Shown: positions 3,694 through 62,226 of the stretch, one piece after another
Numbering within the stretch: the stretch's first letter is position 1
How the letters are laid out: every line of letters starts with the position of its first letter
NCBI GenBank assembly: GCA_977017575.1
Contig: CDRNVI010000078.1
Location: forward strand, 1-64,000
Length of the DNA: 64,000 bases
Source of the DNA: Paramoeba atlantica
Taxonomy: Eukaryota > Protista > Discosea
Direction of reading: 5' to 3'
Program-made: the position numbers and the translations under genes
The notes under the pieces: model-generated
Told to the model about the DNA's origin: nothing
The model's database searches: none
Seen by the model: only the letters and a program-made list of their open reading frames with translations

Positions 3694-5667
3694 CTAGCGG
3701 TACTCCGGCAGGTAGTGCGGGGGGGCTGCGGGGTGACTGCTGTCGTAGGCCTCCGTCCCCGGGCTGGGGCCGAGCCCCGGGTTCGTCCCCGGCCCGGACC
3801 CGTAGGCCATCACGCGGGGGGGGTGCGCCCCGGCCTCCCGCACGCCGTGGGGAGGGGGGTGGGGGTAGCCCCCCCCGGGGTAGCGCGAGCCCTCGAGGGC
3901 TCCGTAGGGTACGACGTGGAGGGGTTGGCCGGTGTGGGGGTCGTACAGCACCCGCGGGGGGGCAGGCCGTGGGTGGGGCGCCCCCTCGGGGGTCTTCGAG
4001 CCCATGAAGTCTTTGGGGCCAAGCCCCCAGAGGGAGGGACTCCCGGGGAGCGCACGGTGTCGGGTCTCCCAGGAGGGGTGTGGGGGGAAGGGGTCGATGG
4101 GGGAGGCGATGGGGGGGAGGTGCGAGGCCCCCGGGGGGTTGCGCTCACTGTGGGGGGCGGTGGGGTGGGGAGTCCCGTAGTGCGTAGTGGGGTGCGGTGG
4201 GGTGGGGTAGTGTTGTTGTCGCTCGGGATGGGACTCACGTAGGCTCCAGAGGGTGGGGGTCTCGGCGGGGGCGTCGCGGTACATGGGGGGAGGAGGGCGA
4301 TGGGGTGGCCGATGGGTGCTGGGATAAGAAGCCGAGCGTGTCGGAGAGGTTTCCAAGGAATCCTGTCGCTGGTCGAGCTCACTGGGGCGTCGCTGCGTGC
4401 GGGAGGCGTCACGTTGGATCGAGGTCTCATTAAGGGTGCCATGGCGAATGCGCTCCATTGAAGAGGAATTGTCGCTTAACGTGGAAGGCTGAAGGGGATC
4501 CAGCACATCACGGGAGGACGCGGATATACGATCGTTTAAATTCAATGCGTGAACGAGATCACTTACAATAGAGTGGGTGGGGTTGGGGCGATCCGTATTT
4601 TCCGGTTCCTCCAGTGGAACTTCGGTTTCGTCGCATCCAAACACCACTTGGGGATAGCCTTCCTTCCGCTGCATCCAGGTTGCAACATACGCTGGGTAGG
4701 ATAATGTAACTTTGTGTGGAGGATTGCGCTCAGGCAAACGAGTAGCTTGCTCATCTAATTGAACAGGTTTGACCTTTTCAACAGTAGTGTCCTCATGACC
4801 GAAAATCCAAGATGTCTCTCCTTGTTTGTCGGATTCAAATACGGATTTCGCGGTGACGTAAAGCTTATTACTGATATTCTCGAGCTCAACATTCTCTTTT
4901 ACTCCCACAGCCTCATCTATTTCCTCAACCCATTGCTCCTTTGATGATTCGTTTATTATTGGATCGTTCACTTGCACCTCCACTGTCTGTGATAATAGTT
5001 CATTCGAGAAGTTCAAGGTTCTGGTTTCATCAGTTTCAGCATCTGCGCTTGTCCCATCGATTTCTCTTTCTGTAAGTGTTTTTGCGACAGATCTTTGTAA
5101 GGCCTCTAAATACGATAGTTTTGCTAGTTCACGTTGCACAGGTGCTATTGGGTCATGTGTAGTCTCAGGTTCAGCGCTGGTGTGCACAGACACCGATCCG
5201 CCTTCATTAGCTTTCTTCTTGTCTCCAAGAGTATGCTCCGTGTGACCGAAACGTAATTTTTGATGTCTATCAGCAAAGCGATTTACTTTGCCATTCCAAT
5301 CTATTTGCCGCGCCTCTCCGTAAGCCCTATGTCTACTATTATTCGTATGATGTCGTCCAGTACGCAATGTTTTTGTTTTTTCTTGGTCCGACATTTGCGT
5401 CTCCTTAGGTGTTTTCTGAGACTTCGTGGCAGACTGTGCCTCACGTGAAAGCGCATTAGGGACAGAAGAGTCTACGCTTTCTCTACCACCTCTACGAGAA
5501 ACGAATGGCCTTGCGCGATCAGAAATCTGTGTAATTCGAGAAGCGGTCCGGGCTGAAGACACTTCACATACCTCACCGTGATCCCTTCCTTCATATTTTT
5601 GAGATTGTGCAGAGCCTCTAGTGCGCCCTCGCGAACTATACCGGTACCCGCGTTCTTGATATGACAT
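3694..5667 (-). CDS. Hypothetical low-complexity protein with a Pro/His/Gly-rich C-terminus
   Basis: Long ORF on the host-gene strand; likely start MSYQERG at 5667; no recognisable domain. Confidence 0.65.
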   Translation of the reverse strand: MSYQERGYRYSSRGRTRGSAQSQKYEGRDHGEVCEVSSARTASRITQISDRARPFVSRRGGRESVDSSVPNALSREAQSATKSQKTPKETQMSDQEKTKTLRTGRHHTNNSRHRAYGEARQIDWNGKVNRFADRHQKLRFGHTEHTLGDKKKANEGGSVSVHTSAEPETTHDPIAPVQRELAKLSYLEALQRSVAKTLTEREIDGTSADAETDETRTLNFSNELLSQTVEVQVNDPIINESSKEQWVEEIDEAVGVKENVELENISNKLYVTAKSVFESDKQGETSWIFGHEDTTVEKVKPVQLDEQATRLPERNPPHKVTLSYPAYVATWMQRKEGYPQVVFGCDETEVPLEEPENTDRPNPTHSIVSDLVHALNLNDRISASSRDVLDPLQPSTLSDNSSSMERIRHGTLNETSIQRDASRTQRRPSELDQRQDSLETSPTRSASYPSTHRPPHRPPPPMYRDAPAETPTLWSLRESHPERQQHYPTPPHPTTHYGTPHPTAPHSERNPPGASHLPPIASPIDPFPPHPSWETRHRALPGSPSLWGLGPKDFMGSKTPEGAPHPRPAPPRVLYDPHTGQPLHVVPYGALEGSRYPGGGYPHPPPHGVREAGAHPPRVMAYGSGPGTNPGLGPSPGTEAYDSSHPAAPPHYLPEYR

Positions 5668-6036
5668 GGAGGCTGGAGGGGGCAATAAAAAATAAATTAA
5701 AAGATATAAATAAAAAAGATAAATAAAATAAATTTTTATAAATAAAAAGGATGGTAACACTTGCATAAAGTTGTGCAGGGGGAAGCTAATACGGGATTCT
5801 TCATCTCAGATGAAAGGCAGAAACTCCTTCAAGGGCGAACTAGCTCGGTCCAGCTAGAAGAACAATTTGTCCGTCGCCATCACACACGAGGATTTTGGAG
5901 AATACATTACGTGTAGACACACCGAAACACTGCCTTCAGTGTCTCTTCAAGAGCTTTTTCTTTATGTATAAAGTTGCTAGTCTTGCCCCCCCCCCAATGG
6001 ACATACATGATTCGCGTACTGGGTAATATGCACCTA

Positions 6037-27635: not shown

Positions 27636-30600
27636 TACTTTAATTCAAAGAACGCTCAGCTAAAGCAAAAGAATCAGACGACAAAGGATACACGCAGCAG
27701 AGATTTGCACTCAAGTCCAAAAGAGCGAAAGAGGAGAAACAAAAATGTATAGGGGCTTTCTATTTAATAGTAAATGTTTGTTTAGCTTCTCCTACCTTCA
27801 TATGAACATTGTTTTTGATTTTTAACAATTGAATGAGTTTCTGTAAAAAAATGGTCGCTATTTCTTTCGCCGAATTTCTTGAACTCGCGTTTTCACCAAG
27901 TCTTTTCTTCCACGTAAATTCAACCAGGACCGGTGGGATCGGCCGGGATCGTAAATCCCTAGTTTCAGCCCTCTTATTATGTGCACAAGAACGAACGCTG
28001 TAAAGTGCTTCATAACCGAGAACAGCAGGATACCCAGTCGAATGTTGTCAAGTGCGTTGATTTCATAAATGAAGGCCTCTCATGCTTGGCCGCTAAGAGC
28101 AGCATGTCAACGGAAGCCTTCCTTTCGTTCGTACGATCATATGAAGAAATACGTCCAAACAGTCCACCAGCAGAAATACTGTCTCATTTGCCTTGCCCGA
28201 AGACTTTTCATGTGAAGGAAAAAATTGTTGCTAGTAAACTTTGGGAAACGATTCGTGCAACCGTGAAGCAGCACTCATTTTTTGGACTAGCTGTAGACGG
28301 GGGAATAGATAATGTCAAACATCAACACATAGTTGTAAGCGTAATATATCGGAGAAAGTTCGTTTGTGTTGCCACTTGTATATCATAAGCGAAAAAAGGC
28401 CTTTAGTGGAGCCGAAATGTCCGCACACCTTATGACTATGTTAAGAAGAGGTTTGGGAGACGATGTCTTAAAGCTGCGGTACTTGATGGTGGACGGATGC
28501 GCAGTTGATCATGTTGCACGTGCCGCCACAGAAGAAGCACTTAAACAATTTTATGAGCGGTACGAAGAAGTAGGTACTCTTGACAAAGAGCATTTGTGTA
28601 ACGGGGTGCGTTCTGTTGTTCCATGCGTTCGTGAGCTTTCTTGCTTCGGTCACCTAGTAAATTTAGTTGCTCGTGAAGCGCTTGCTCACTATCGTCAACG
28701 TCCTTTTATGCAACTCCGCGACTCTTTCGCGCGCCTGTTTTATTCGGGAGGAAAACCTAGCGCCAAGAAAGGAAAGTACTTGGGGAAAGCTCTCGAGGAC
28801 CTTGTATGCCCGTACGACACGACTACGAGCGAGTGCGTAGAATTTTTTTCGCAGTGGTGTTCCTTGCCTGAAGAAACTCCTCTCACTGAAGCTATTTTAC
28901 AGAACCATTTCAGTAAACTATTGAAAGCACTAGAAGGACTCCAAAGAGTATGTGGGCTAGATCTAAGTGATATCAAATGAGTACTTTCGTCAGACACCAG
29001 CTCAGAAAGTAAGCAGGAAGCATTGAAGCAACAAGGACCAAAAATTGTTGATGCGTTGCAGAAGGCTCGGCAAGTTTCCACTACCCGCTCCAAAGCTTGG
29101 AGGCGCTACGCGATGGTGCACAGATTATTTTGACAGTGTTCAGTACCTAGCTACTCAGATGCCAGCGATTATATCGTACGTGCAATCTGAAATTGAATCT
29201 GGACGGCCATCCAAATCTGTTGAACGGTGCGCAAGCATCGCGGTTGCGAACAGCATGGAAGATATGATGAAGGAGGCGAATATGTTCTTACAGGAATTGA
29301 AGCCTGTTCACGACATACTGAAGGAACTTTCTGACGTACGGGACAGTCCTATGGCGCTGATTCCCTACCGCGCTACTAAACTTTTACTCAGAGAGGCTGA
29401 TCGTGAAGGTTGCCCCGCAGAGTTAGGTGCGGCTCTTCGAAAACACCTAGACGGACTGCAGCAAAAGTCGTTCATGTTCTTCTGGGAGGGAGTGATGAGT
29501 TTTTCACCAATGTACGTACTCATGGTTCGAGAGCATAGGGAAGAGGCCGGCACGATCATTGGAGTTGACGGGGCTAACGATCTCTTCAAAAGTGGGACAC
29601 CAGTGTTTGGAATTATTGCCGAGGTTTGGTCTGAATACTCGTCCGGCAAAGGTTTTGACCGCGATCCAGCCGAGCATAAGACGGCCTGGAGTTGGTGGCA
29701 GTCAAGAGGGCGGGAATTGTTTCCCACTATTTATGAAGCTGCTCGTCACTACCTCTTTGTTGTCCCTGTTGTCACCGAATGCGACTCTCTGCTTTCCATC
29801 ATGGGATGGAAGTATGATGCACGGCAGGCTTTTCTAGAATCTGACGTTATTGCGACACAGATGTTCCTCCGCGGTAATTTGGAGAATATTGGATTTTCGT
29901 GAAGCTGGTTTGACAAGAAAGCGACGTTTATAGACTTTTGCTATACCTGTAGTACATTTTTTTAAGTTTACTTAGGGTTTTTTTTCCGTGAGTTCTTGGT
30001 TATGATCATACGCTCGTGGCGCAGAGATACGTCTCTCTGTGTGACGGCCGATACCATCGGCGCATGACCCGCATACGACGGGTGTCACACAGAGAGTGGA
30101 GTGCGAGGTAGGAGACGAGACGCCCATCGGTCATGCTACAGCACGTATAGCCATGGTTCATGCTGCAACACGGTCAAGCCGTGGGTTCATGCTGTCAGAT
30201 GGTCTATCGTGGATCATGATGCATCATGGGGAGGTCCGTTACCGCCGCACTCGCTACAGCATGTAGGGAGAGAGGGGTGCAAGTTCGCATCCCCTATACA
30301 CGCATACAACGTGTCCTCCCGCTGTAGCACGCCCAGTGGTCCTCAAGGGAGGCCACCATGGCGCATAGCTCCCGGGAGAAGAAAGCACGAGAAGGAGAGA
30401 GCCGGGGAGGGAAGAAAGCTCACTCGAAGAGAGCGAGCCGGGGAGGGGTGAAGAGTGCGAAGTGCGTCCCCTACTTCCGCGACAAAGAGGGACAGTTTCA
30501 GCTAGCCGTCAGCCGGAAACGGGCATTTAAAAGTAAGAATACGCCCGTTTCCGGGAAAAGAAAGGAAGGGCTAGCAAAATGTACCAACAAGGTACAGAAA

Positions 30601-32195
30601 CTGGTCTTGTTTTTCCCTTTGTAAACATACAAGTTTGAAGTTTCTTCCGTTCTATATTCTATAATATTATATTCGTTCATGGAAAATTTTTATAATTGTT
30701 GTTTGAATAGTAGTATTTCGTGTGATGTCATGAAAGAAGATAAAGCATTTTTGGTCTAATTTTTAATGTTAAGATATACATCTCAAATGGAGGGTTTAAA
30801 TGAGGTGTGTCATTCAATCGAAATGCAACGTAATAACTCCATGCAAAAGACAGTTGTAGACAATGTAGAGTTGCAATCTATTTGCTTCATACACAGTGAT
30901 AATCATAATAACGTCCTCTGGTGTGATCATCATACACACATGTATCTTTAGAAGTTTTTGCCAAATCTCAACAACCTACATAGTTTATGACACCGCGAGG
31001 AGTGTCTTTATGTCGCATCGGTTCTTTTGTCTGCCTCAACCATGTCCGAAACTGCTGCTCCACACTCTCAAAAGTCGCATGAAGTAATCGACGTAGTAAT
31101 CAGTATTCGGTGTAGTAATCAGTAACCAAAATGTAGTAATTTACTACCGATTAAACATCATGTAGTAATTTACTACATGATTAATCCAGGGTATGTATTT
31201 AATATGACTCCGATTTTGGGCAAAATGCCCTTTTAAAGGGGGGTACATGGAAAATAATGTGAAAGAAAAAAAATCGGCGGATTCGATTTTTTTTATCTTC
31301 CCTGAAATCTATTTTGGCCTTCCAGACAAAATGGCCGTATTAAAGGGGGGGTCGTACGTAGCCCTATTAAATAGGGAGGGGATAGTATAAATACAAATTA
31401 TAAACGTTTTGGATTTATCTTTATAATTATAAATATATTTATAATTATAAATGGCTTTTAGGTGCTGTAAACCCAATTCCGAGAAAAATGGACCCCTTTT
31501 AGACCAAAAAAGCTGTTCTGCGTATCCGGATTTTCGTATTTTTCACTGCCTTGCCGCTCCGAGCCGCTCAGATGACGCTTCACCCCTCTTGCTTTGCTTT
31601 AAATTTCGAGCAGACTCATTTTTGTTTATAAATAAGAAGTATTTATAAATCTTGAGAACAGGGTAATTTATAATTAGTTGTTAGAGGGGGGTATACTATC
31701 CTGGAGAATATCCTGGAGAATATTTACTCCTGGACGATATCGACGAGATATAATTTATGATATCTCGATATTCTGGATTGGATTCCCCGATATTCTAGTT
31801 CGATATCGACGAGTGTCCTGAAGTTCGATATCAGACGTTGCAAAAACAAAAAATATCAACGGGAGCACAGCCAAAAACGCGAATACGTCTAGGTTGCGGT
31901 CGCGCTAATCAACACCACCCTCCTCTGAAAAATCGCGAGCTCTATGAAGAAGGTACTTCGATGCTCCACATACTAAGGGAGGCAATGGTCGGAGTCACAA
32001 AGCCTATGATGTTCAAGTATTTTGCAGAAGTTTCCCAGCATTTTAGTACCCTCACTGAGAAAGGACAGAATAAGTTTGGGCTGCGATTATGTAAGTATGC
32101 AAACATTATTCGTCGCCGAGTCAATGGCTGTACACAAATGGTTCCTGTGGCTCCGTGTTACAAAGCTACATGCATCAGTACTGAAAACCAATGGG

Positions 32196-34814: not shown

Positions 34815-35429
34815 TTTTCAACGAGAAAAGAAGAGGTACAATTCATTTTATTTAATAAACGCTCAAAATAGGCATAGAAGAGAAGATTTTGACCGAAAGA
34901 AATGTCTGTACCAAAGCTGAAATGATATTGTACCTCCCGACTTAATTGTCACCCCTTTTTAGAGAAAAGCGACAAATAACTAGGAGGTAGCTGTAGCTAG
35001 GCACATTCCATCTGAAGACCTTCGACCAAAACTGAAATATAAGTAAGGGGGTGGGCAGTGACCATTATGTAGAGGGGGTATAGTAATATGGAGACTTATA
35101 CATATACTTATACATATACTTTGACGAATGAGATCGAAAGATCCCCTAGACGCTCCACTCCGTAGCTACGACTCGCTAGGTCGGAAAACGGTTCCCTTTT
35201 CTTGACCGACATATCTAAGCGACGAGGATAAAAATGCTGCAAATTGTAAATAAACATTCTGTTCTCCTCATGATGCCATTGTGATTGAGGCGAGTATCCT
35301 GCTGAAGTTGATGCGAGTGATCCCACTTTCTTCAAAATATGAAGCCCAAAAAAGTTAACGTTCAGCATTCAGGATAGATCACTTGCCAAGACTTCTCCCG
35401 ATTCTCCTTTCTCCTGGCTCGACCATTTT

Positions 35430-38400
35430 TCATTCTTCTTCTTTTTCCTCTTCTTTCGTCCACTGTTGCCTTTGAGATGACAAAACGTTATACTCTGTTG
35501 TACTGGGAACTAGTTCGCCTTCGCTTTCGCTTTCCTGATTTAGTAACCTCCGTAGCGTGCCTTCACGATACGTAGAAAGTCGGGCAAAAAGAGCCTTACC
35601 AAACATCATGTGCTTCGAACGCTCTTCTCGACAAGTTCGTATTACTTGATGAAAGGCTGCATTCACTGCTTCAGAAAGCGTTCGGGTGTGAGCCTGACTG
35701 CCAGATAATAAAAGTATCGAACGCGTGCTTGAAGGAGTCAACAACCTTTTGACCATAGGATCAGGAGCAAGGAGAAGTGCCTGGGATAAACCCTGTGCTA
35801 CATATCTTGCCATAACGGGGTACGTTTCGGAGTCGTTGTCCCAGTCTAACGGAACTGATCGTTGTAAATTGTTCCGTATCACGTGCTTCAGAAGTCCGTG
35901 AGTCAGCAATTCAAGAGGAATACGAAGAACATGGCACGAGCTGAGCTCAAACGCGCTCAACAAGTCAAAAAAGAGGTGCGCCAGAGTTTCTGTTAATTGG
36001 GCCTCAGTAGCGTACACATAATTGCGGTATTTTGGGACGAGCACGCGAATAGACTGACCTTTTTCTGATAGTACGTGTTGCACCTTATATTGCGAATCCT
36101 TAGAGCTTCGCAGAGACGCAACGCTTATGTGACATACGTCGGGAACATACGAATCGCGTTCACCTTCAATTTCTTTTGAAAGACGTTTGAGATGAAAAAC
36201 GTTATCTCGAGCGTCATTATCGGTTGCCAAAAAAAGAGTCTGCATTTCCGCGAGGTGCTGTTCCGTTGGCGCAAAAAGTTCAAGCTCTCGAACAAGTTGA
36301 CTTCGAATCCGACAAAGGGAAAGGCTGAAACGAAGATTTTGAAAAAGCGTCCCGGAGGTGACGTGAAGCCGTAGTTGGCGACCACGGAGAGACCCCACTG
36401 GTGTGTTTTCTGCGGTGTTCCCAGAAGAATCTGTGGAGGGGACTTTGACAGATGATTCATCATCGCTTGTGTCCTCCGACTGAAAATGGTTCCACTCTTC
36501 ACCCTCTTTGCGAAAGGCATCCTCTAGTGCCCCAATCAGGACTTCGGGGGTAAGTGAAATAATAATCTCTCTTGCTGGAGATGGGAGACTGGACATCTCA
36601 GCAGATAAAAAAGGGGTCACACGAAGTTCCCTGTACTCGTGTGGTGCCCAGCGAAGTCGATTAAACAAATGTGCGTACGCGCGTTGAAGTTTAACTCGCA
36701 GCCTCTGTATCACCTCTTGCATGGCATCAGAAAATTGCGCTCCCATAGAACGCAAGTGGTGCAATTCGTCTTCAGCCTCTGTCCGTAAAATGCGTTCCAA
36801 TGCATCGATGTCCAGCATGTGACCGGTGGAGCGTGGATGTGTTGAGGAATCAGGACCGACATTTACGTCGCGAAAAATATAGGACGTGTACCGCGCAATT
36901 CGAGCAGCCGTATTAAACAGAATGCCACTTGTAGTTTCGTCATCTGCGGGTGTTGACACATTTTCTCGGTCGCTATCCGCATTTCGCGTTCCCCCTACGA
37001 TCTCTTTTACTGGAGAACCACTAGTTCTGTCAGTGGAGGATCCAGTCCCTTCATGAGACACGAAAGAAACATCAAGAAGAAACCTTGTGTTTTCAAAAAC
37101 AACCTCGTTAACAAGCTCGTCCATTTGGTCGGTAGACACATACAGGTCCGCGATTTCGCTAGACACCGGAGGGGTTAAGCCTTGTTCAACTTGCGATGTG
37201 ATGAGAGAGATATTGAGACAGGGATTCCTACCGCTGCTGTACAACATTAGTCTCTGCGGTGGGCACGACCGATATAAATCGTGAGCCGTATGAAGAGCGG
37301 CTTCAAGCAATTCGCTATTTTGACCCGCAGCGTATAGCTCATTGACTTCATCTGTGCCATAGAGGTGAGGAACTGCAAGTATTGTTTGGTACATGTGAAA
37401 CATCTCCGGATCTTCCAGCCCAAGTTGGTTTGACTGCCGCAAAATAGTGTCGTAGGTGCGATCGAGTTCCAAGCGCGCATGTAGCATCATGGAAGCAGAC
37501 AGATAGACGGGCATGAAAAGAGGGTCAGTCGCAAAGAAAAAGTCAAAGAACCGACCGACGACGTGTACGGGGCCCTTATCGTAGGCTGTAGCAAACAGAG
37601 TCGCGATCCAAGCCATGGCGTAGTTCCCCTCCATGTGCCCGGAGGCCTCGATGTGCCTGGCTACTATGGGATTACGATATTCCACCAGAGGATGAACAAG
37701 GCGATATAAAGCCTGGGTAAATTTCATTCCATGAGTAAGATGCGGCCGAATCCAGTATTTTTTTAGCAGATGCATCAGAGGAATCGCGTCATCTTTGCTG
37801 CAAAGAAGATAGGGCACTAAAGCCACTTCATTCAGCCCTTGATAGTAGGACGCTTCGTGATCGTTAGAGAACACTTGTTTCATTATGAACCAAAGATCAT
37901 CCTGCTGCTTGAGATCTGTTGTGTTTCCATAGCGGCATCGGGACAAATCCTTTTTTATTTGTACAGACGTAGTGGCTTCCATCAATGATTCCGTATAACC
38001 TATGGGCCACGTAACCGTATTCTCGTACTTCAGTAGTCTACGCCATGCACAACAGCGATCCATGATGTCCGTTCTCAAACCGGACTGAATCGCCCGATGG
38101 CGCAGACGAGCCAAAGCGGAATGAAACTGATTCTCCGAATCCAGGTTTTGCTTTAACCAGCTTCGTGCGTCCGAATTTCTCAAAATTAAAAATGGCGTCG
38201 AGTATACGAAATAGCTGCGAGGAGCATATCGAAAAGAGAATCTACCTCCAGAACGTTCTGTACAGTTCATATAAAAATGAAAAACGTTTTCCGTTTTTTT
38301 GGCGGCTAAAGCTAATGTCTGAATAGCACTTGAGGAGATGGATGTAGAAGTTTCTTTCGAAACAGTTACGGCGGAAGCCAGCCATGAGATCGCGGCCCTG

Positions 38401-39860
38401 CTTTCGTCATTTGTAGGCAGCCCCGCTTCAATTGCAAGTCCACACTTAGTCAAGCGTTCTCCTTTTGTCCAAGTTACATTTATCATCTCTTCCTCAAAAT
38501 ATATAGGCAATTGTTTCTCTGCAGAAAGAAAAGCTGTGCTTGATAAGAGCAGGGGAACGGGTTGAGGTTCTGGACTTAGAAATACAACTTCTTCTAATTT
38601 CTCAGCCTGATTCCGGATAAAGAAGTCTTCGCTATACGTCTTTGGCACCGCTGGTGGCAAGAAACCGTTGTCTTCGATGGGAGCTTCAAGAAGGTCTACA
38701 CCATGGAAGACAACTCGGTACCACCCTGATCGAAGCTCTTTGGAGGGAAGTAAAAGCTCCCATTGATGTTCAGGAAAATCTTCATATTGTGTTGATTTCG
38801 CGAGACCTTTTTCGGCATACGTTGAAAATCGGGACATAATCTGTTTGAGTGGAATTTTATGGTTCGAAGGAAAGGAACGAATTACTCTATGTCTTCGCGA
38901 AAGTGAGGCGTGCGAGAATCTAAGAGCAATGTTCGGAATAGGAGAATATGTTGTGGAAGCAGAGCGGTACTCTACGCTTATCATTGCTCGGCTTCCTACC
39001 CAATTGCGATACGCTCTGTACAGAAAATTTAGTTGAACCGATAAAGTAAGCTCAGCTTCGGACACTACGATGGTATTATAAAGAGGCTCCTTCTTGGGAT
39101 ACTGTATCAGCAGTTTCCCTCGTGGCAATAAATGAAAAGGTTCAGTGTAGCGCAAGCCCACACGGAACACGTAGCACGCTTTTAACGGTTGGGATGAAGT
39201 GTGTAATGTTCCTCCTTCTCTTTCCGGTACGCGTAAGAGAATTCTTTTTCGTGTGTCACTCCACACGACTTTTTCGCACGGAATACACCCCCCTTCCTTT
39301 GGATTTTGCAGAATCGGATGAAACTCTAACAGATCGATTTCACAGAGATCTACAGTATCGGCACTTGAGCGCAAGACCTGAGAAGCAAAGACGTCATACC
39401 AAGAATGATCTTCCGTATCTGTGCGACGTAGACAAATTCTGTCCCCGGCAAATAAAACAGGACCAAGGTGCTTGTCACGGCACACTGGTGTTCTGTCCTC
39501 CACAAGAGAAGTCTGAGACGTGTCCGAACGTGACTTAGGGAATGGATAAAATTCCCAGCCTGCATACCTGGCCCATTCGGGTGTCGCATATGCAGGAGGT
39601 CCCAAAACATTTGATAGCTGAATCGCCGGATCGGCAATAATCGCCGCTCGAAGGCTTTTCCTCTCCTTTTCAAGTTCGGGGTCGCCATCTACACAAGAAG
39701 TTGTGATAAATGCTCTTACGCATCGAATCCACGGAAGCGTGGCAGATGACGATTTTTCTTTTTGTGACACACATACGTCCGTACTGCACAATCGATTTGA
39801 GGTCTTGTCAATCCCGTTAAAAAGAGATAAAAACAAGAAGCAGAAGAATAGAAGTTTCAT
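35430..39860 (-). CDS. Large TBC (Rab-GAP) domain protein with a signal peptide, paralogue 1
   Basis: R-finger IKKDLSRC and Q-finger YYQGLNEV; likely start MKLLFFCFLFLSLFNG at 39860; collinear with 49330-54483. Confidence 0.85.
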   Translation of the reverse strand: MKLLFFCFLFLSLFNGIDKTSNRLCSTDVCVSQKEKSSSATLPWIRCVRAFITTSCVDGDPELEKERKSLRAAIIADPAIQLSNVLGPPAYATPEWARYAGWEFYPFPKSRSDTSQTSLVEDRTPVCRDKHLGPVLFAGDRICLRRTDTEDHSWYDVFASQVLRSSADTVDLCEIDLLEFHPILQNPKEGGCIPCEKVVWSDTRKRILLRVPEREGGTLHTSSQPLKACYVFRVGLRYTEPFHLLPRGKLLIQYPKKEPLYNTIVVSEAELTLSVQLNFLYRAYRNWVGSRAMISVEYRSASTTYSPIPNIALRFSHASLSRRHRVIRSFPSNHKIPLKQIMSRFSTYAEKGLAKSTQYEDFPEHQWELLLPSKELRSGWYRVVFHGVDLLEAPIEDNGFLPPAVPKTYSEDFFIRNQAEKLEEVVFLSPEPQPVPLLLSSTAFLSAEKQLPIYFEEEMINVTWTKGERLTKCGLAIEAGLPTNDESRAAISWLASAVTVSKETSTSISSSAIQTLALAAKKTENVFHFYMNCTERSGGRFSFRYAPRSYFVYSTPFLILRNSDARSWLKQNLDSENQFHSALARLRHRAIQSGLRTDIMDRCCAWRRLLKYENTVTWPIGYTESLMEATTSVQIKKDLSRCRYGNTTDLKQQDDLWFIMKQVFSNDHEASYYQGLNEVALVPYLLCSKDDAIPLMHLLKKYWIRPHLTHGMKFTQALYRLVHPLVEYRNPIVARHIEASGHMEGNYAMAWIATLFATAYDKGPVHVVGRFFDFFFATDPLFMPVYLSASMMLHARLELDRTYDTILRQSNQLGLEDPEMFHMYQTILAVPHLYGTDEVNELYAAGQNSELLEAALHTAHDLYRSCPPQRLMLYSSGRNPCLNISLITSQVEQGLTPPVSSEIADLYVSTDQMDELVNEVVFENTRFLLDVSFVSHEGTGSSTDRTSGSPVKEIVGGTRNADSDRENVSTPADDETTSGILFNTAARIARYTSYIFRDVNVGPDSSTHPRSTGHMLDIDALERILRTEAEDELHHLRSMGAQFSDAMQEVIQRLRVKLQRAYAHLFNRLRWAPHEYRELRVTPFLSAEMSSLPSPAREIIISLTPEVLIGALEDAFRKEGEEWNHFQSEDTSDDESSVKVPSTDSSGNTAENTPVGSLRGRQLRLHVTSGTLFQNLRFSLSLCRIRSQLVRELELFAPTEQHLAEMQTLFLATDNDARDNVFHLKRLSKEIEGERDSYVPDVCHISVASLRSSKDSQYKVQHVLSEKGQSIRVLVPKYRNYVYATEAQLTETLAHLFFDLLSAFELSSCHVLRIPLELLTHGLLKHVIRNNLQRSVPLDWDNDSETYPVMARYVAQGLSQALLLAPDPMVKRLLTPSSTRSILLLSGSQAHTRTLSEAVNAAFHQVIRTCREERSKHMMFGKALFARLSTYREGTLRRLLNQESESEGELVPSTTEYNVLSSQRQQWTKEEEKEEE

Positions 39861-40184
39861 CTCATGTTGGTATGACAAGGTTCTCGCATTAGATTGCTGC
39901 GCATTGCTGTTCCATTATTATAAAAATAAATTGTTCGCTTTAAGAAACATTTGCACTTCTAGTTTGTATTTCTATTCTGAACTCAAAGCTATGGTTCTCC
40001 TGACTCAACACGCGAATCATACCATATTCGACATGCTGTGAATGACACATGCGGATCTTGAATTGAACTGCGAATCAACTGTGAAATTTCTCTTGCTCTT
40101 GTATATAGAAGTATAAAAAGTAAAATACGTTTAAAAAGCCCCAAAAAACAAGCTAGCGAAATATTTTTGAACGGTGTAACTATG

Positions 40185-40805
40185 TTAATTTGGCGCCCCA
40201 AAAGCTTCGGGAAGTCTTTCAATTGTATATCGATGACGACTAATGTACATGATGGGAACACCCGGGATCTTTCTAATTCTTCTTTTCAGATCTTTATCAC
40301 AGGTTGCTACAATATAAATTCGATGTTGCGTGATGCGGTCAACAATGCAATCATCCGCGTAAGTGCTACCGCAGTGCAAACGCTGAAAACGAGGATCTCG
40401 TGCTAATCGAAGTGCGATACGAAATTTTTTCCCCAGTTTTTCCATTTCAGCCAGCACGCAATCACAAACACATGGTACACATTTCGCCATCAGGCAGTCC
40501 ATCATTGAAGGAATGATTTCCAACTTATTTTGCATGGAAAAATTTATAAAATTTGTGTCTAGAAGAATATGAAAGGGAGGCCCAAGGGCATGATTATACG
40601 TGAGAAACATTGAGCTTGGCATTTGTTCGGTGCGACGAACTTCTTTAGCGTCAAAATGTTGAGCATCTGCGTCGGTAAGACCTTTCCTGTTGTATGTAAC
40701 TTGATACTGGTGATGCTCTTCTTCCTTTTCTCGTTCTCTTTGTAGTCGGTCTTTATGGAGAATGCGCTTTATAGCTACCCTGCGTGTTTGTCGTGATTTC
40801 GTCAT
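40185..40805 (-). CDS. FCF1: rRNA-processing PIN-domain protein Fcf1/Utp24
   Basis: [55 protein letters not shown]. Confidence 0.95.
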
Positions 40806-41030
40806 GTTAGAATATTTTTTATCGGAAAGTAAACTTGTACGATGTCAAAAGAGACAAACGAACCACAGACGTAGAAAAAATAGGAAAACTGTAGAGTTGA
40901 GAAAAGCAGAACGCCAAAAGTCTAACTTACAACGGTGCGCTAAACGTAGCGCATCTTTTCATAATAGAATTTTGAAGGTGCGTGAGACGTACACTTAAAA
41001 GTAGAACGGTGTGACAAAATTTTTACAAAA

Positions 41031-41982: not shown

Positions 41983-42351
41983 TCAGTTTTGTACCGCGGC
42001 ATGCGCTATCTGGGCGTTCCCCTTTTGGATGGCTACCCCGATTGCCATGATAAAATGGCTGAGGCAATCTTGAGACAATTTACGCCAAGCTTTACGTACG
42101 CTTTTTATGAGATCTTCTTTATTTGCAGGATTGCATTCATCTACAAGATTTTGTACCATGCTCCACACGTTTTCTATTGTTGAGAGATCGGGGGAGTTGG
42201 GCGGCCACTTTTTCAATAATTTCATTTTGCTGCCCTCAGGGTACGCTTTTATTTCCTTCGCAGTGTGAGGTGTTACCCCATCTTGCTGAAAAATACAGTT
42301 TGGGGTGAATGGTACTTTTTTTAATGTTTTAATGTACGAAACACATCTCAT
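41983..42351 (-). pseudogene. Tc1 transposase C-terminal remnant
   Basis: IFQQDGVTPHT..KWPPNSPDLSTIENVW. Confidence 0.85.
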
Positions 42352-52300: not shown

Positions 52301-54483
52301 ACTTTCGTCCCTGGTGTTAAATGTGGTCGAATCCAATACCTCGTTAATTGCTGCATGAGAGACACAGTTGTTTGAGTATCGCATAGAAGGTAAGGAACCA
52401 TAGCCACATCGTCCAATCCCTGATAATAAGGCGCCTCCAAATCGACAGAAAGGATATGATTCATAATGTAGCTAAGTTCATTTTGCTGGTGAGGATCTGA
52501 AGAATTTCCGTAGCGACATCGATGTAAGTCTTTTTGAACCTGGTGGTAATTGGGAAGAGCATCAGGTTTATTTGCCCTACCTAGCCGCATTGCAGTATCG
52601 AGATTACCCACTAACATTTGCTCCCATGCCTTGCACCGACGTTGCGCAGCGTCCTGTAATCCAAATTCAATGGCTCGCTGTCGTGTGCTCTCTAGAGAAC
52701 GGGCGGCATGAGGAGATTCCATGTGCTGTCGCTGTACGCGTTTTACCCACTGCTGCGCGTGATCTGGATTTAGAATAAGAAAAGGAGTAGAATCCACGAC
52801 AAATTTTTTTTCGTCCTTTATCAACCACATAATCCCCGAGTGCGTTTCCTGGCAAGTCATTCGAAAGAAAAATAAGGAAGTAGGTAGCCTCATTGGGTCT
52901 ATCACAGCGTTGTACAGCACATCCGCTTCGACCGGAGGATCCAAATGCGACATTTCAGAAACCTCTATGTTAGAAGCCAGCAAGAGAACTTGATTAGGTT
53001 CTGCGTCTTCCGGTGTACCGGCAAACAGTGCGATATCACAATGCGCTTTTAGTTTGTTGCTCGCGTGCCATGCCACATTGATGTGCCTATCGGTACTAAA
53101 CACAGGAATACGTCTTTCCCGGATAGATGCCGACTCCTCCCCATCAGGGAAGCCTCCAGCAATAAGACGAGCCTCCGGAGAAACGAATCGCACGTCATAT
53201 TGACTTTGTTGTCGTTGCACACGTATGTAGAACTTTTCGCTGTACGTAAACTCTGTGGTGGGTGGGGAAAAGTTGTTTTGCTGTGTGGGAGGATCGATGA
53301 TGTCGACGTGGTGAAATGCTACGCGGTACCAACCCGTTCGCATGCGAGACATTGGCACAAGCAATCTCCAGTAGTGCTGAGCGTGATCCTTAAAATACTT
53401 CGTTCTTACTGCATTCTTTCGGCTAATAGAGTAATAGCGAGCAAGAATCTCCTTAAGTGGGATCGTGTGCGATCTGTCCGCGTCCATTGAGCGTCTCCAA
53501 GGTGTCATTTTCTGAGAATCCCCTCTTGCAGCGGAACCGAAAGACATATCTAGGCTGACCTCTGGCACAGGAGAAAATTCATCGGACCCCGGGGCTTGAT
53601 GTTGCAAGCTCAGCGCGGCCAATGGGCCGACGGATTTATCCCATGCACGGTAAAGAAATCGAACGATGACTTGTGAGTACCCACCTGGTACAATTTCAAC
53701 GAGATTAGGGTGATACGTCGGTGCATACGAAGGTTCTTGAATATGCAACACTCCGCGTCGCATTAGAGTAAACGGGGTGCTGTACCGAAGCCCCACGCTA
53801 AAGACGTAGCACCCGAATGTCAGTTTGTTAAACAAATCTTGTGAAGCAAGGTCTTTCCCCACAGGATTTGGTACAATAACGACAATACTTTTCCCAGAGC
53901 CACTCCACGTGACGTTTGGCAACGTGACACAACTTCCTTCTTCCGTGTTCCTTAGGGCCGGATGAAACTTATTGAGATCAACTCGACACATCTCAACCGA
54001 CTCAGTATTGCGATGTAGAGCTTGGGTGGCAAAGGTTTTGTACCAAGCTTCATGATGAGGTGACCAGGGTTTCTCTTTCAACTCTACTGCGTCTCCCATG
54101 AAGAGAATTGGGCCACGGTACGCGTCATAAGTAGGTTCCGAGATTTGTACGCCTGGAGGTAGATGTAAGGTGGTATTTGCTTTTCCATGACCCCCCACGT
54201 CCCAATGCGTGTATCTAATCCACTGTGGTGAGAGGTACTTCGGTGGGCGATACATTTCTGAGACCAACAAGCTAGGGTCGCGGTTTAGAACCTCAGCAAA
54301 TGGACCTTCAAATTTCATGATAGATTCAGCTTTTGTGAGGTTGTAGGGCCCTTTCGGTGAAAAACGATTCGTCTCTTGTACCTCGCCGTCATGAGATTCT
54401 ACACTTCTGTTCGCCATTGATGAATCGCGCAGAGGTGCCGATAACAGTAAGAATAATGCCACGCAACGTACAAGCTGAAACAT
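49330..54483 (-). CDS. Large TBC (Rab-GAP) domain protein with a signal peptide, paralogue 2
   Basis: VQKDLHRC and YYQGLDDV fingers; likely start MFQLVRCVALFLLLSA at 54483; collinear with 35430-39860 plus a longer low-complexity tail. Confidence 0.85.
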   Translation of the reverse strand: MFQLVRCVALFLLLSAPLRDSSMANRSVESHDGEVQETNRFSPKGPYNLTKAESIMKFEGPFAEVLNRDPSLLVSEMYRPPKYLSPQWIRYTHWDVGGHGKANTTLHLPPGVQISEPTYDAYRGPILFMGDAVELKEKPWSPHHEAWYKTFATQALHRNTESVEMCRVDLNKFHPALRNTEEGSCVTLPNVTWSGSGKSIVVIVPNPVGKDLASQDLFNKLTFGCYVFSVGLRYSTPFTLMRRGVLHIQEPSYAPTYHPNLVEIVPGGYSQVIVRFLYRAWDKSVGPLAALSLQHQAPGSDEFSPVPEVSLDMSFGSAARGDSQKMTPWRRSMDADRSHTIPLKEILARYYSISRKNAVRTKYFKDHAQHYWRLLVPMSRMRTGWYRVAFHHVDIIDPPTQQNNFSPPTTEFTYSEKFYIRVQRQQSQYDVRFVSPEARLIAGGFPDGEESASIRERRIPVFSTDRHINVAWHASNKLKAHCDIALFAGTPEDAEPNQVLLLASNIEVSEMSHLDPPVEADVLYNAVIDPMRLPTSLFFFRMTCQETHSGIMWLIKDEKKFVVDSTPFLILNPDHAQQWVKRVQRQHMESPHAARSLESTRQRAIEFGLQDAAQRRCKAWEQMLVGNLDTAMRLGRANKPDALPNYHQVQKDLHRCRYGNSSDPHQQNELSYIMNHILSVDLEAPYYQGLDDVAMVPYLLCDTQTTVSLMQQLTRYWIRPHLTPGTKVTRSLFRLVHPLVEYKDPVGARHIEAASQAGGDYAFAWIATLFTTAYTKGPLHVVARMYDFFFATDPFFMPVYLSASMLIHARADLDRAYHDIVRQAEELGLEEPETFHMYQAIFSVPHRYGTTEIDELYGSGKTDEPLENVLAYALELYKVCPPERLMLYEPGTNPCLGQRPNEEGDQSSDVVSPVLSPNVTLSPIDTPSQSILDSDQLLSEGAVSSVRVDVLMSFEDTVEKLMNDPEFVYIESADSEPLPSSRCAEISLTDRNSRPSSAGLFGKSNKDSTEVEYTNSTLSDVRLNRRPRKSSSSRRSSSSRRDRSRSDMGIPNPFRFFAAPERKGGHSRSPSPHGSSTASKSSSPVDCMSVLDAAGPLEDAYVALQLDELESTLQDTVNQLFNSETASLSGETPETTLRQELQEAYAQAFKRWKRWNSRSAEFLMKPFLYEEMLEWAKNPLASSIMHLTAPAILQAIDEVLQQEQAMEEFSDPKSAASCPEIPSNETVGSDSRFQIKRSSTHSQFLYDGGRSLLQMALRLYIPQHDLYVQLRQFLSRTRMSVALQRPSLYITSGNDLQQLQSLFISAKYSAQDKEVRTANRVESVISTEVEEIVNKGSYIKGARARPAAFILSSGTSQFEVDPFTVESDGSCRIRVLLPRFKQYIYSTEEQLTETLSNLYYRLFDEFQRSPCYSLRIPVDELTHDFVRHVLYYHLKRLPEGQWNNQTYCTKAIAQYNTKALIDTLLRAPDLMIHRLNQPFGAHAVYFCAGSRKGSKIYTKALNKAFGRAVLSRREEEAKRSMFGSGTGGCRSRSRSRLRGRTLSHASPTPSSSHLSAPPAPPPQPIHLTPSRFRVGSYEEEPILREQQNHTATADGSEWDETSTCSALGSSREPEESGGTSLWEEGWETTSGPGEGSSMQLRGKEEEEEDPFLGPVESNAETQQWGEEGKNSEEMESGSSPKRLVVHPAANSAEADFSVPQGVTRRKLSGVPLHSKEE

Positions 54484-55031
54484 TCCTATTTTTTCCTTTC
54501 TCATGACAACATGACAAGTAAAATAAATTACGCGTAAAATTAGGCAGTCAAATTATTCGATGTGATTAATAGGGAAAAACGATTCTCCGCTTTATGAAAT
54601 ACAATACTATAAAAGAATAGTAGTTACTTCTCCATTCATAGCTCAAAGGAACTACAGGCAGTTCTCGAATGGCCCATTACTCATCATTCAAATCTTCCCA
54701 ACGAACTCTTAATTATTCCACAAAAAACGAGCGATTTTTTACTTATTTCCACCCCACTGATCGCGAAAGACAATATGGACACCGAAATTCGGGGCGAATC
54801 ACCTTGCACACGCTCTCTGAACATTCATGAGGCTGCTGCGTTTCGGATGCAGCCTTGGCGACCATTACTGATCTAGCCCAGTCCCCTGTACCAGGCGTTC
54901 ACTCCTGTCAGCGTGAGACAAGAGGCGTGTAGCTACTTGATGTTAAATTTTGATTCCAGAGTGCGACGCACTTTAGGGATTATTCGTCTCCGCCCCTGAC
55001 TGCTCCAGAGGTTCTCTCAGGAGATCGACAT

Positions 55032-59653: not shown

Positions 59654-60286
59654 CTAATCCCACCTGTACCTCGGTCGTATCACCGGACCCGTCACCTTCT
59701 CCGGGCACCGTTGCAGCACATTCGGATCCTGATACCTCTCCGTCAACCCCAACGGTCGTTGTATCTCATACAACCACGCATGCCGCCTCCTTGCCACCTC
59801 CCTCACCACCCCCTCCGTTCCCTCCCCCCTTCCCACGCTCTCCCGTGCCGTGCGCATCCCGTGGAGCTCCCCCGCGACGGCCGGCTCCCCGGGGCGGTAC
59901 GGGTCGTAGGCGCCGGAGTGCCTGTGGTGCCGCCGCATCCACTTGGTGCAGTACGCGCGGTGCATGTCGGTCTGCACCTCGACCCACTGGTACGACGGGT
60001 TCACGACGCTGTGGCGCAGTGCCATTACCCCGGGGGCCGTGGAGTGGAGGGTGTAGGTGCGGGGGTGGAGCGTGGCGCCGGGGCCGTCGTGGTAGAGGGG
60101 GGCGCGGGTGTAGTAGCGGTGGTCGTAGCGGTGGCGCTGGCGGAGGAGCTGGGCGTGGGGGCCGGGGACGGGGGAGCCGAGGTCGAAGTTGAACTGGAGC
60201 AGGGTGCGGCGGCGGTGGTGGTAGCGGTTTTTGAGGTAGCCGGAGGTGGCTTTGCTGGCATAGGTGGTGGGGGTGGCGTGGAGCAT
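59654..60286 (-). CDS. Probable mitochondrial ribosomal protein bL27m
   Basis: Short presequence, then ASKATSGYLKNR (compare bL27 A.KK.GGS.KNGR), LLRQR and TLHSTAPGV (compare TLFA..DG.V). Confidence 0.6.
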   Translation of the reverse strand: MLHATPTTYASKATSGYLKNRYHHRRRTLLQFNFDLGSPVPGPHAQLLRQRHRYDHRYYTRAPLYHDGPGATLHPRTYTLHSTAPGVMALRHSVVNPSYQWVEVQTDMHRAYCTKWMRRHHRHSGAYDPYRPGEPAVAGELHGMRTARESVGRGEGTEGVVREVARRRHAWLYEIQRPLGLTERYQDPNVLQRCPEKVTGPVIRPRYRWD

Positions 60287-60650
60287 GGGGGGGGGAAGAG
60301 GAAAAGGAAGGAAAAAAGAAGGCGGGAAAAGAAGGTAGGCGATGGGGGTTGGGGGGTAAAAAGGGTGGAATCGTGAAGAAAAAGTGCGGATTGTGGAAAT
60401 GGGTGAGGGGGAAAAATCTACTAAACACTACTAGGGGGTTATTACTACTAAGGGGGGTGGCAAGATTGGCTTCTGTGTGTGGATTTGGCATTCAATTCCA
60501 AAAAAACAACGAAAATAAGGTGATCCTTGGAGATGACTACTCCCCCGTGGGCATGTTCCTTGTCTTTGCCTTTAAACACAGGTTCAACCTACCGCCCACT
60601 ACAAATCCTACCTACTCACTCCTGTTCACGTACAACACCCTCACCTCTAC

Positions 60651-61922
60651 CTACACCCATCCGGCACCATCAAACGAGACAGCATGTGTGGAGGGGATAC
60701 TCGGAGGGGACATGGGACACAGAACCGAGTCCGGCCCCTCACCCTGGGCCTCGCCCCCATAGGCACTCGCCCCGATCAACGGGGGACGCACCTCATCAAA
60801 CCACGGGCTGAGGAGTGCCGCCTTCGCGGAGACCCGTGCCATAGGGTCATACCGCAGCATCGAGGACAGCAGTGCCTCCCCCTCCGGGTCCAGCTCCGGA
60901 AACAGCGACCGCAGGGGCTGCGCCCTCCACTGCGGGAACTGCGGGCAGAAGTCCTCCAGCCCCTCCACGGCATGCCACACCCCCGCATTCGGGGTCCCGA
61001 GCAGCTGGAATATCTTATAGAGCTGGTCAATCTCGCAGTCCCCCGGGAACAGCGGGGTGCCACGCCCCAGCAGCTCCCCGAGTATACACCCCACACTCCA
61101 CACATCCACCGCAGCCGTGTAACTCGGGGACCCGAGCAAGATCTCCGGCGGTCGGTACCACTGCGTCACCACCTCCCGGGTGTACTCCGGGGTCGGGACA
61201 TGAAACGCCCGCGCGAGTCCAAAGTCCGCCAACTTCACCTCCTCCGCATCCGCACTCACCAGAATGTTATGCGGCTTCAAGTCCCGGTGCAGCACCCGTC
61301 GCCCGTGGCAGTGACACAGCCCCGCGAGGATTTGGAACACAATCCGCTTGATGGCGTGCCAGGTCGTTTTTGTGTTCGTAGGGGTCATGGTCTCTGCCCC
61401 CCCCTCGGCCCCCCCCTCCCCGAAGGCCCTCTCCATCCACGCCTTCAGGTCCATGTCGACGAACTCGAACACGAGCGCGAGGCGGGCGGGGGTGCAGACG
61501 ACGTCGTGGAGCCGCACCACGTTGGGGTGGTCCAGCGCGAGCAGCAGGGAGGTCTCGCGCAGCGCGGTGGCGGGGATCCCCTCCTCGGCGTCCTCCGTGG
61601 TGCGCATCTTCTTCAGCGCGACGGTGCGGCCGGTGAGGGTGTCGCGGCACTGGTACACCGCCCCGTACGTGCCCTCCCCGAGCTTCATCTGCTTCACGTA
61701 GCGCTGGGTGGGGTCCGGGGCGCCGGGGGGGAGGGGGGGCGGCGCCGGGGAGGGGGGGCCGGTGGCGTTGGTGCGGTCCACGCCGAAGGCCGGGGGGTCC
61801 GCGCCTCGGGCACGTTTCAGGGGTAGGGCCTCCTGTGTGGGGTGCGGGGGGGCGGTGACGCAGGTGGGGTGGACGTGGGTGTGGGGGAGACGGGGCTCGT
61901 GGTGACTTCCGGGGTGGGTCAT
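60651..61922 (-). CDS. Cyclin-dependent kinase (CDK1/CRK-like); start uncertain
   Basis: GEGTYG, VALKK, PSTAIRE-box variant EGIPATALRE, HRDLKPHNIL, DFGLAR, YTREVVTQWYRPPE. Confidence 0.93.
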   Translation of the reverse strand: MTHPGSHHEPRLPHTHVHPTCVTAPPHPTQEALPLKRARGADPPAFGVDRTNATGPPSPAPPPLPPGAPDPTQRYVKQMKLGEGTYGAVYQCRDTLTGRTVALKKMRTTEDAEEGIPATALRETSLLLALDHPNVVRLHDVVCTPARLALVFEFVDMDLKAWMERAFGEGGAEGGAETMTPTNTKTTWHAIKRIVFQILAGLCHCHGRRVLHRDLKPHNILVSADAEEVKLADFGLARAFHVPTPEYTREVVTQWYRPPEILLGSPSYTAAVDVWSVGCILGELLGRGTPLFPGDCEIDQLYKIFQLLGTPNAGVWHAVEGLEDFCPQFPQWRAQPLRSLFPELDPEGEALLSSMLRYDPMARVSAKAALLSPWFDEVRPPLIGASAYGGEAQGEGPDSVLCPMSPPSIPSTHAVSFDGAGWV

Positions 61923-62226
61923 GGGGGTAGGGAGGTGAGGGGTAGAGGGAATAATCGGTAAGGTTGGGGTATGGGTTCATTGTGATGCATGTGCAAAACG
62001 ATAGATTACCTTTTTTAAACACCATCTTCCTTTATTGAAGTGTGTGTACGTTCCTCTTTTACAAAATCTTAGATGGTAAGACAGTACTCACGTAAAATCA
62101 TGTGTGACTCTTTTGGTCCCCTAAAAATTAACTTCTTTCTCCACTTTCTTCCTCTTCCTGAGACTCTCTCACTTACACGCTTAGCACATGCCCCGTCCCG
62201 GGCGCTCCTCTCCCGCTTTGTACGCT

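Follow-up and report, generated by a model that had tools for sequence, protein, structure and literature searches.

A gene in a 64,000-nucleotide stretch of DNA from the Paramoeba atlantica assembly (GenBank GCA_977017575.1, contig CDRNVI010000078.1, positions 1 to 64,000 of the forward strand; hereafter the window) encodes p1, a giant Rab GTPase-activating protein (Rab-GAP) of the TBC type that begins with a hydrophobic leader and is one of three paralogues. The TBC core of p1 and of its paralogues p2 and p3 is assigned by sequence likeness to the TBC1D20/Gyp8 (TBC-M) class, and the reading favoured here, held with about as much belief as doubt, is that p1 is a lineage-specific housekeeping Rab-GAP of the endoplasmic reticulum (ER) and Golgi whose N-terminus is used for membrane targeting. 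A first-pass annotation of the same DNA had proposed instead a secreted trafficking effector of an endosymbiotic or parasitic, Perkinsela-like kinetoplastid. The features of the p1 gene that bear on the choice between these readings are as follows.

35430..39860, minus strand: p1 coding sequence, 1476 amino acids (aa) plus stop (open reading frame list; RNA contigs of sequencing run X3; ratio of non-synonymous to synonymous change, dN/dS, 0.26)
39813..39860, minus strand: hydrophobic N-terminal leader, aa 1-16 (hydropathy; retained in the allele on contig C46 and in an ENA contig)
39861..39939, minus strand: 5' untranslated region (5' UTR) of ~77 nt with a putative trans-splice acceptor AG (39939-39938) (X3 contig end; sequence)
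38136..39632, minus strand: orphan N-domain, aa 77-575, apparently beta-rich (paralogue alignment)
37488..37985, minus strand: TBC Rab-GAP domain, aa 626-791 (Pfam match)
37938..37958, minus strand: arginine finger IKKDLSR (IxxDxxR) (motif and alignment columns)
37836..37847, minus strand: glutamine finger YYQG (YxQ) (motif and alignment columns)
35433..36860, minus strand: orphan C-domain, aa 1001-1476, acidic at its end and lacking a hydrophobic tail (paralogue alignment; hydropathy)

The TBC domain with two intact catalytic fingers described in the first-pass annotation was recovered in full. The Pfam model RabGAP-TBC (PF00566) matches p1 over aa 626-791 with 57.1 bits against a cut-off of 25.2, and p2 with 54.3 bits; the fingers read IKKDLSR (from aa 635) and YYQG (from aa 672) in p1, VQKDLHR and YYQG in p2, and IGADVPR and YYQG in p3. 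In alignment A4, where the three paralogues stand beside five TBC1D20-like proteins, the finger residues D, R, Y, Q and G do not vary. Because the fingers are held invariant among paralogues that are only 26-41% identical, the proteins are probably working GAPs, which would imply a GTP-bound Rab substrate in some cytosol. The closest solved structure in the PDB is that of human TBC1D20 (4HL4/4HLQ, E=3e-12). Furthermore, an exhaustive HMMER search with a profile of the N-domain and TBC region against 1.84 billion representative sequences gave 1003 matches, of which the best 150 were listed; among these 150, the same-species ENA protein P0001 was followed by proteins of 350-420 aa, two of which carry the label K20372 TBC1D20/GYP8 and come from the free-living prokinetoplastids Papus and Apiculatamorpha.

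The TBC-M class has as its hallmark a C-terminal transmembrane domain, which is needed for ER localisation and for the inactivation of Rab1 by TBC1D20 (Gabernet-Castello et al., 2013; PMC3655817). A hydrophobic C-terminal tail is present in 37 of the 60 best-matching TBC relatives, and a hydrophobic start in 2 of the 60. In a hydropathy scan with a 19-residue Kyte-Doolittle window and a threshold of 1.3, neither p1, p2 nor p3 has a hydrophobic segment after the TBC domain, and the hallmark tail is thus absent from all three. A search of the whole assembly with the Papus TBC1D20 protein as query matched p1, p2, p3 and their alleles only; since none of these carries a C-terminal hydrophobic segment, the genome appears to be without a canonical tail-anchored TBC-M protein and to hold three giant paralogues in its place.

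The first-pass annotation had numbered p1 as the first of a set of paralogues, and the set is real: p2 lies in the same window, on the same strand and 9.5 kb from p1, and p3 lies on contig C6.

49330..54504, minus strand: p2, 1724 aa, with collinear N-domain, TBC domain and C-domain (BLAST to p1; Pfam TBC; fingers)
54430..54504, minus strand: p2 leader, consisting of a basic n-region and then a hydrophobic core (hydropathy; identical in the C46 allele)

The two proteins p1 and p2 are 41% identical across aa 77-883 of p1, a figure that falls to 30% across the C-terminal 430 aa. The third paralogue, of 1210 aa, shares the order N-domain, TBC domain, C-domain and is 26% identical to p1 across the N-domain and TBC region. 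Each of the three has an allelic twin on another contig, 98-100% identical. At the N-terminus, p2 begins MRKEKIGMFQLVRCVALFLLLSAPL, in which basic residues precede the hydrophobic core, and p3 begins MFLPIFLHLVSTG, with weaker hydrophobicity than p2. The N-terminus of p3 aligns with the p2 leader, and the p1 leader sits on an extra extension of ~40 residues (p1 residues 17-76 give no BLAST alignment to p2); on the strength of these alignments, a hydrophobic N-terminus has been kept throughout the family and is not an accident of one gene. Contig C98 carries another large TBC open reading frame (1235 aa), the fourth in all, which is unrelated and has no leader.

Equally characteristic are the two domains that flank the TBC core. 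The stretch of ~550 aa of unfamiliar sequence that the first-pass annotation placed ahead of the TBC domain corresponds to an orphan region of ~560 aa in which no relatives were found. Within it, an N-domain of ~500 aa is conserved in p2 (35%) and p3 (24%; alignment A3) and carries four cysteines that are invariant across the paralogues, and the C-domain, which spans ~480-700 aa in the different paralogues, is conserved at 32% and 23%, respectively (alignment A5). Neither domain has a Pfam match at E up to 10, a meaningful match in a profile search of the PDB (the lone match has E=0.86) or a usable neighbour in the ESM Atlas feature search, and scans of JGI metagenomes with the N- and C-domain alignments, based on back-translated patterns that are narrow, gave 0 confirmed relatives. 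Among the best 150 of the 1003 HMMER matches, P0001 is the only one to cover N-domain positions, the others matching the TBC part only; word-index protein searches with whole p1 and with its TBC region likewise returned the same-species P0001 alone, and outside p1-p3 and their alleles the N-domain was found neither in the window (tblastn) nor in the search of the organism's own genome. Altogether, the N- and C-domains appear to be without detectable relatives in Pfam, the PDB, the Atlas, the metagenome scans and the best 150 profile matches. AlphaFold2 models built on the three-sequence alignments reached a mean predicted local distance difference test score of 35 and 39, which is too low to use, with a hint of a beta-rich N-domain.

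Compared with known systems, p1 shares with human TBC1D20, yeast Gyp8 and the TBC-M class at large the IxxDxxR and YxQ fingers and a TBC core that is closest to theirs by sequence (4HL4). The differences are architectural: TBC1D20 and Gyp8 measure ~350-420 aa against 1210-1724 aa for p1-p3, and, unlike them, p1-p3 lack the C-terminal transmembrane tail and possess a signal-peptide-like N-terminus together with two orphan domains. The TBC1D20-like proteins of Papus ankaliazontas and Apiculatamorpha spiralis (EukProt) give the top family-profile scores (E=4.9e-34 and 3.4e-28), and the Papus protein shares 34% identity with p3 across the TBC core; these proteins, unlike p1-p3, are 360-422 aa long, with polar N-termini and without N- or C-domains. 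What is new here is the assignment to the TBC1D20/Gyp8 class, the presence of three collinear paralogues and, throughout them, the absence of a tail anchor combined with hydrophobic starts; p1-p3 are an architectural variant of a known family.

The gene itself is intact, transcribed and under purifying selection. The minus strand from 35430 to 39878 is a single open reading frame in the list compiled for the window; its first in-frame ATG lies at 39860, the protein starts MKLLFFCFLFLSLFNG and comprises 1476 aa before the stop, an in-frame TAA stands upstream at 39915-39917, and the second in-frame ATG is codon 293, deep inside the N-domain. Sequencing run X3 behaves as RNA, and the evidence taken from it consists of its contigs, not of individual reads. 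These contigs span 35300-39938, with a single uncovered position (36093) at a contig junction; on the 3' side of p1, coverage runs from 35300, plus 169 nt beyond. On the 5' side there is a gap in coverage at 39939-40106, and the last base of the p1 contig is the G of an AG, 13 nt past a 9-bp allelic indel; the end is not attributable to this indel, since a break caused by it would lie at another position. The trans-splice acceptor of p1, as judged from the contig break, is most probably the AG at 39939-39938, which leaves a 5' UTR of 77 nt, and the continuation of the RNA contig to 39938 backs the start at ATG 39860 that the first-pass annotation had used. The 5' UTR (39861-39937) contains four upstream ATGs, all out of frame. 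One short upstream open reading frame terminates in a TGA sharing bases with the main ATG (ATGAGATGA) and could dampen or regulate translation.

Between the haplotype copies of p1 there are 27 synonymous and 23 non-synonymous differences (dN/dS 0.26), and the sole indel between them is the loss of one in-frame codon inside the leader, which stays hydrophobic; the leader is retained in the C46 allele and the ENA contig with this single lost codon and an F to L change. The leader is very probably translated. In the ENA contig ERZ24900291 ctg3917l (L001:13500-13700, near window position 36340), an AAAA run has one A fewer than in both assembly haplotypes, with a frameshift as the result, and the protein called from it, P0001, ends at 1214 aa; the missing base is either a fault of the assembly or the mark of a genuine null allele. 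With 25 substitutions relative to the C46 allele, this contig would represent a third haplotype or strain.

The hydrophobic leader of the first-pass annotation stands, as does its claim that no transmembrane helix separates leader and TBC domain: the leader is the only 19-residue window of at least 1.3 in p1, and the same holds for p2. On a leader score defined as 11-residue hydropathy over the first 30 residues and compared among 36 open reading frames of at least 250 aa, the top three are p1 (2.9), calreticulin (2.88) and p2 (2.73), followed by a low-complexity-looking frame at 3694-5766 (2.35) and p3 (2.0), with all remaining frames below 1.5; the p1 leader thus stands out from the background of N-termini in this set. 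The p1 leader consists of MK and a hydrophobic core of 12-13 residues, the p2 core has ~10-12 residues, and the net charges of the N-side and C-side flanks in the three paralogues are +2/0, +4/-1 and +1/-2, the N-side being more positive in all. The features of classical signal peptides (short n-region, core of 7-15 residues, more positive N-flank) are accordingly present, more weakly in p3 (2.0). The leaders of p1 and p2 also resemble the signal peptides of calreticulin and BiP from the same genome, which start MLLLFLLGFLAPLCPTLRA and, if BiP is read from its second Met, MWTALFYTLLLGIGF; the mitochondrial HSP70 has an arginine-rich start, MLVRRSLGSLSL. No ER-retention motif like the terminal MEDL of BiP occurs in p1-p3. 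Calreticulin (L008:1432-2664) ends in FYEL and BiP (L024) in MEDL; KDEL-like ER-retrieval endings are familiar from other eukaryotes, and FYEL is unusual beside them.

Under the positive-inside rule, a more positive N-flank goes with an N-in orientation and a translocated body. The leader charges of p1-p3 hence predict an N-in/C-out arrangement, that is, a signal peptide or a type II anchor with the TBC domain in the lumen, and the possibility named in the first-pass annotation of an uncleaved N-out anchor with a cytosolic TBC domain gains no support from the leader. The likeness to a signal peptide claimed there therefore holds at the level of rule-based features and of resemblance to calreticulin and BiP, and nothing found shows export to a host. 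The NxS/T sequons that it cited are present and uninformative, their numbers being at chance level: 6 observed against 7.4 expected from shuffled sequence in p1, 11 against 8.1 in p2 and 0 against 4.6 in p3.

The identity of the organism bears directly on any effector role. The X3 contig over the neighbouring Fcf1 gene covers 40107-40834 and then continues with 21 letters absent from the window, which on the strand of that gene read ATACAGTTTCTGTACCTTGTT and are joined at an AG after a long pyrimidine tract; the tail of the spliced leader on these RNAs is ...CAGTTTCTGTACCTTGTTG, and ATACAGTTTCTGTACCTTGTT includes CAGTTTCTGTAC, the conserved core of the kinetoplastid spliced leader. The spliced-leader exon tail has 922 genomic copies dispersed across the assembly, against 0 in a reversed-pattern control, with one copy in the window (30586-30603, minus strand); a copy at L004:1440-1560 has one and the same 35-nt sequence on both flanks. 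An identical calreticulin mRNA in JGI record 3300017035 starts with the final four letters of the spliced leader. The spliced leader, together with closely spaced open reading frames that lack introns, marks the source organism of these genes, on sequence grounds, as a kinetoplastid. The assembly measures 45.7 Mb with both haplotypes included, as allelic contig pairs, and is rich in Tc1/mariner, hAT and retrotransposon sequences, whereas the Perkinsela genome has 9.5 Mb (PMC7859406). Calreticulin is 100% identical to the JGI transcript (3300017035) and to an ENA contig and 48% identical to each of the Perkinsela, Diplonema and animal proteins, and the calreticulin search gave no relative from a named organism above 55% identity. 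The source is not the sequenced Bodo saltans either, no near-identical protein from a named organism having turned up. The Perkinsela-like endosymbiont of the first-pass annotation is not supported by these figures.

In the favoured reading, p1-p3 would serve as dual-finger GAPs for the cell's own Rabs of the early secretory pathway (Rab1/Rab2 type), in the manner of TBC1D20 and Gyp8; the conserved hydrophobic N-terminus would take over membrane targeting from the lost C-terminal tail anchor, and the orphan N- and C-domains would add lineage-specific binding of partners or cargo. GAP activity on Rab1/Rab2 at the ER and Golgi is the function expected of the TBC-M class, whose sole representatives in the genome are p1-p3, and a housekeeping role is the simplest one because no other TBC1D20-like genes are found there. 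Topology is the weak point of this reading, since simple sequence rules predict that the body is carried into the ER lumen, and several observations weigh against it: hydrophobic cores of ~10-13 residues are too short to span a membrane as a helix, the more positive N-flank of all three paralogues points to a lumenal body by the positive-inside rule, the leaders match the style of the calreticulin and BiP signal peptides, and the four invariant N-domain cysteines would also suit a lumenal domain. The same leader features and cysteines favour a real signal peptide on a protein that is kept in the lumen of the endomembrane system or, if only partly translocated, is dual-localised, with a TBC fold that either is no GAP or works through a minor cytosolic pool, and the several out-of-frame upstream ATGs could modulate initiation; this alternative is nonetheless unlikely, as arginine and glutamine fingers kept invariant at 26-41% identity argue for retained catalysis, whose substrate, a GTP-bound Rab, is cytosolic, and as the proteins lack a retention motif of the BiP kind. 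Improbable to a further degree is that the leader lies outside the protein, translation beginning downstream or at a non-AUG codon to yield an ordinary soluble cytosolic GAP. The four upstream ATGs and the failure of p1 residues 17-76 to align with p2 would fit such a start, but the RNA contig runs on through the leader to 39938, p2 and p3 are independently hydrophobic at their starts, and a misplaced start is hard to reconcile with an in-frame stop at 39915-39917, a next in-frame ATG at codon 293 within a domain conserved from aa 77, and an allelic indel that is the only one in the gene and removes an in-frame codon of the leader.

The secreted effector, with a cleaved signal peptide, classical export and inactivation of the cytosolic Rabs of a host or prey, is about as improbable as the misplaced start. 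It draws on the signal-peptide-like leader, similar to those of bona fide ER proteins of the same genome and followed by neither a transmembrane segment nor a C-terminal anchor, on conserved fingers that still imply a Rab substrate, and on a family that has grown to three with orphan, fast-diverging flanking domains. Against it stand a genome that is not reduced (45.7 Mb with both haplotypes), the distance from Perkinsela (calreticulin 48%) with nothing found that points to a host, the second membrane that the protein would have to cross if its producer does not lie directly in the cytoplasm of the host, sequons at chance level that p3 lacks altogether, and the absence, in the literature searched, of any report of a eukaryotic TBC protein exported by a signal peptide; moreover, export of all three would leave the cell without a TBC1D20-type GAP of its own. 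A narrower version, in which p1 and p2 would be exported by signal peptide as the first such eukaryotic TBC Rab-GAPs and shut down Rab1/Rab2-type GTPases in host or prey cytoplasm, with housekeeping left to p3, is more doubtful still; p3 has the weakest leader and is the closest of the three to canonical TBC1D20. Shigella VirA, EspG of enteropathogenic Escherichia coli and Legionella LepB are bacterial Rab-GAP effectors that reach the target cell through type III or type IV secretion and are not known to be related in sequence to eukaryotic TBC domains. The comparison with VirA and EspG drawn in the first-pass annotation thus holds as a functional analogy and not as common descent: under the effector reading, p1 would share with VirA, EspG and LepB only the logic of a GAP delivered into another cell to stop Rab1-dependent traffic, and, unlike them, p1 is a standard PF00566 member with an ordinary eukaryotic TBC fold by sequence.

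Several further observations concern the surroundings of the genes. Between p1 and p2, at 41983-42351 on the minus strand, a 122-aa open reading frame matching a DDE_3 (Tc1/mariner-type) transposase in its C-terminal portion (E=3.2e-7) resembles a transposon remnant. A GC-rich island at 60000-62000 (0.64 against ~0.45 elsewhere) carries long overlapping open reading frames on both strands (60651-61922 minus, 60684-61826 plus). The start of the window falls within an HSP70 gene (3-1385, minus strand), and the allelic contigs (C46:59382-65940, C71:298874-314893) hold tandem arrays of 3-7 near-identical cytosolic HSP70 copies. At C140:172632-181054, papain-family (Peptidase_C1) matches occur in short open frames, one with an internal TAG, and may be pseudogenes or genes interrupted in some other way.

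Rab-GAPs of the TBC1D20/Gyp8 type are ancient, normally tail-anchored regulators of ER exit, and this kinetoplastid appears to have replaced one small gene of the kind by three giant paralogues in which the tail anchor has been lost and two orphan domains and a signal-like N-terminus have been gained. If the body of the protein is cytosolic, the membrane anchor would have been swapped from the C-terminus to the N-terminus, and the family would test the reach of simple topology rules in kinetoplastids; if the body is truly translocated, a Rab-GAP that is lumenal or exported would be without precedent. In either case, the orphan N- and C-domains offer new material for structure determination.

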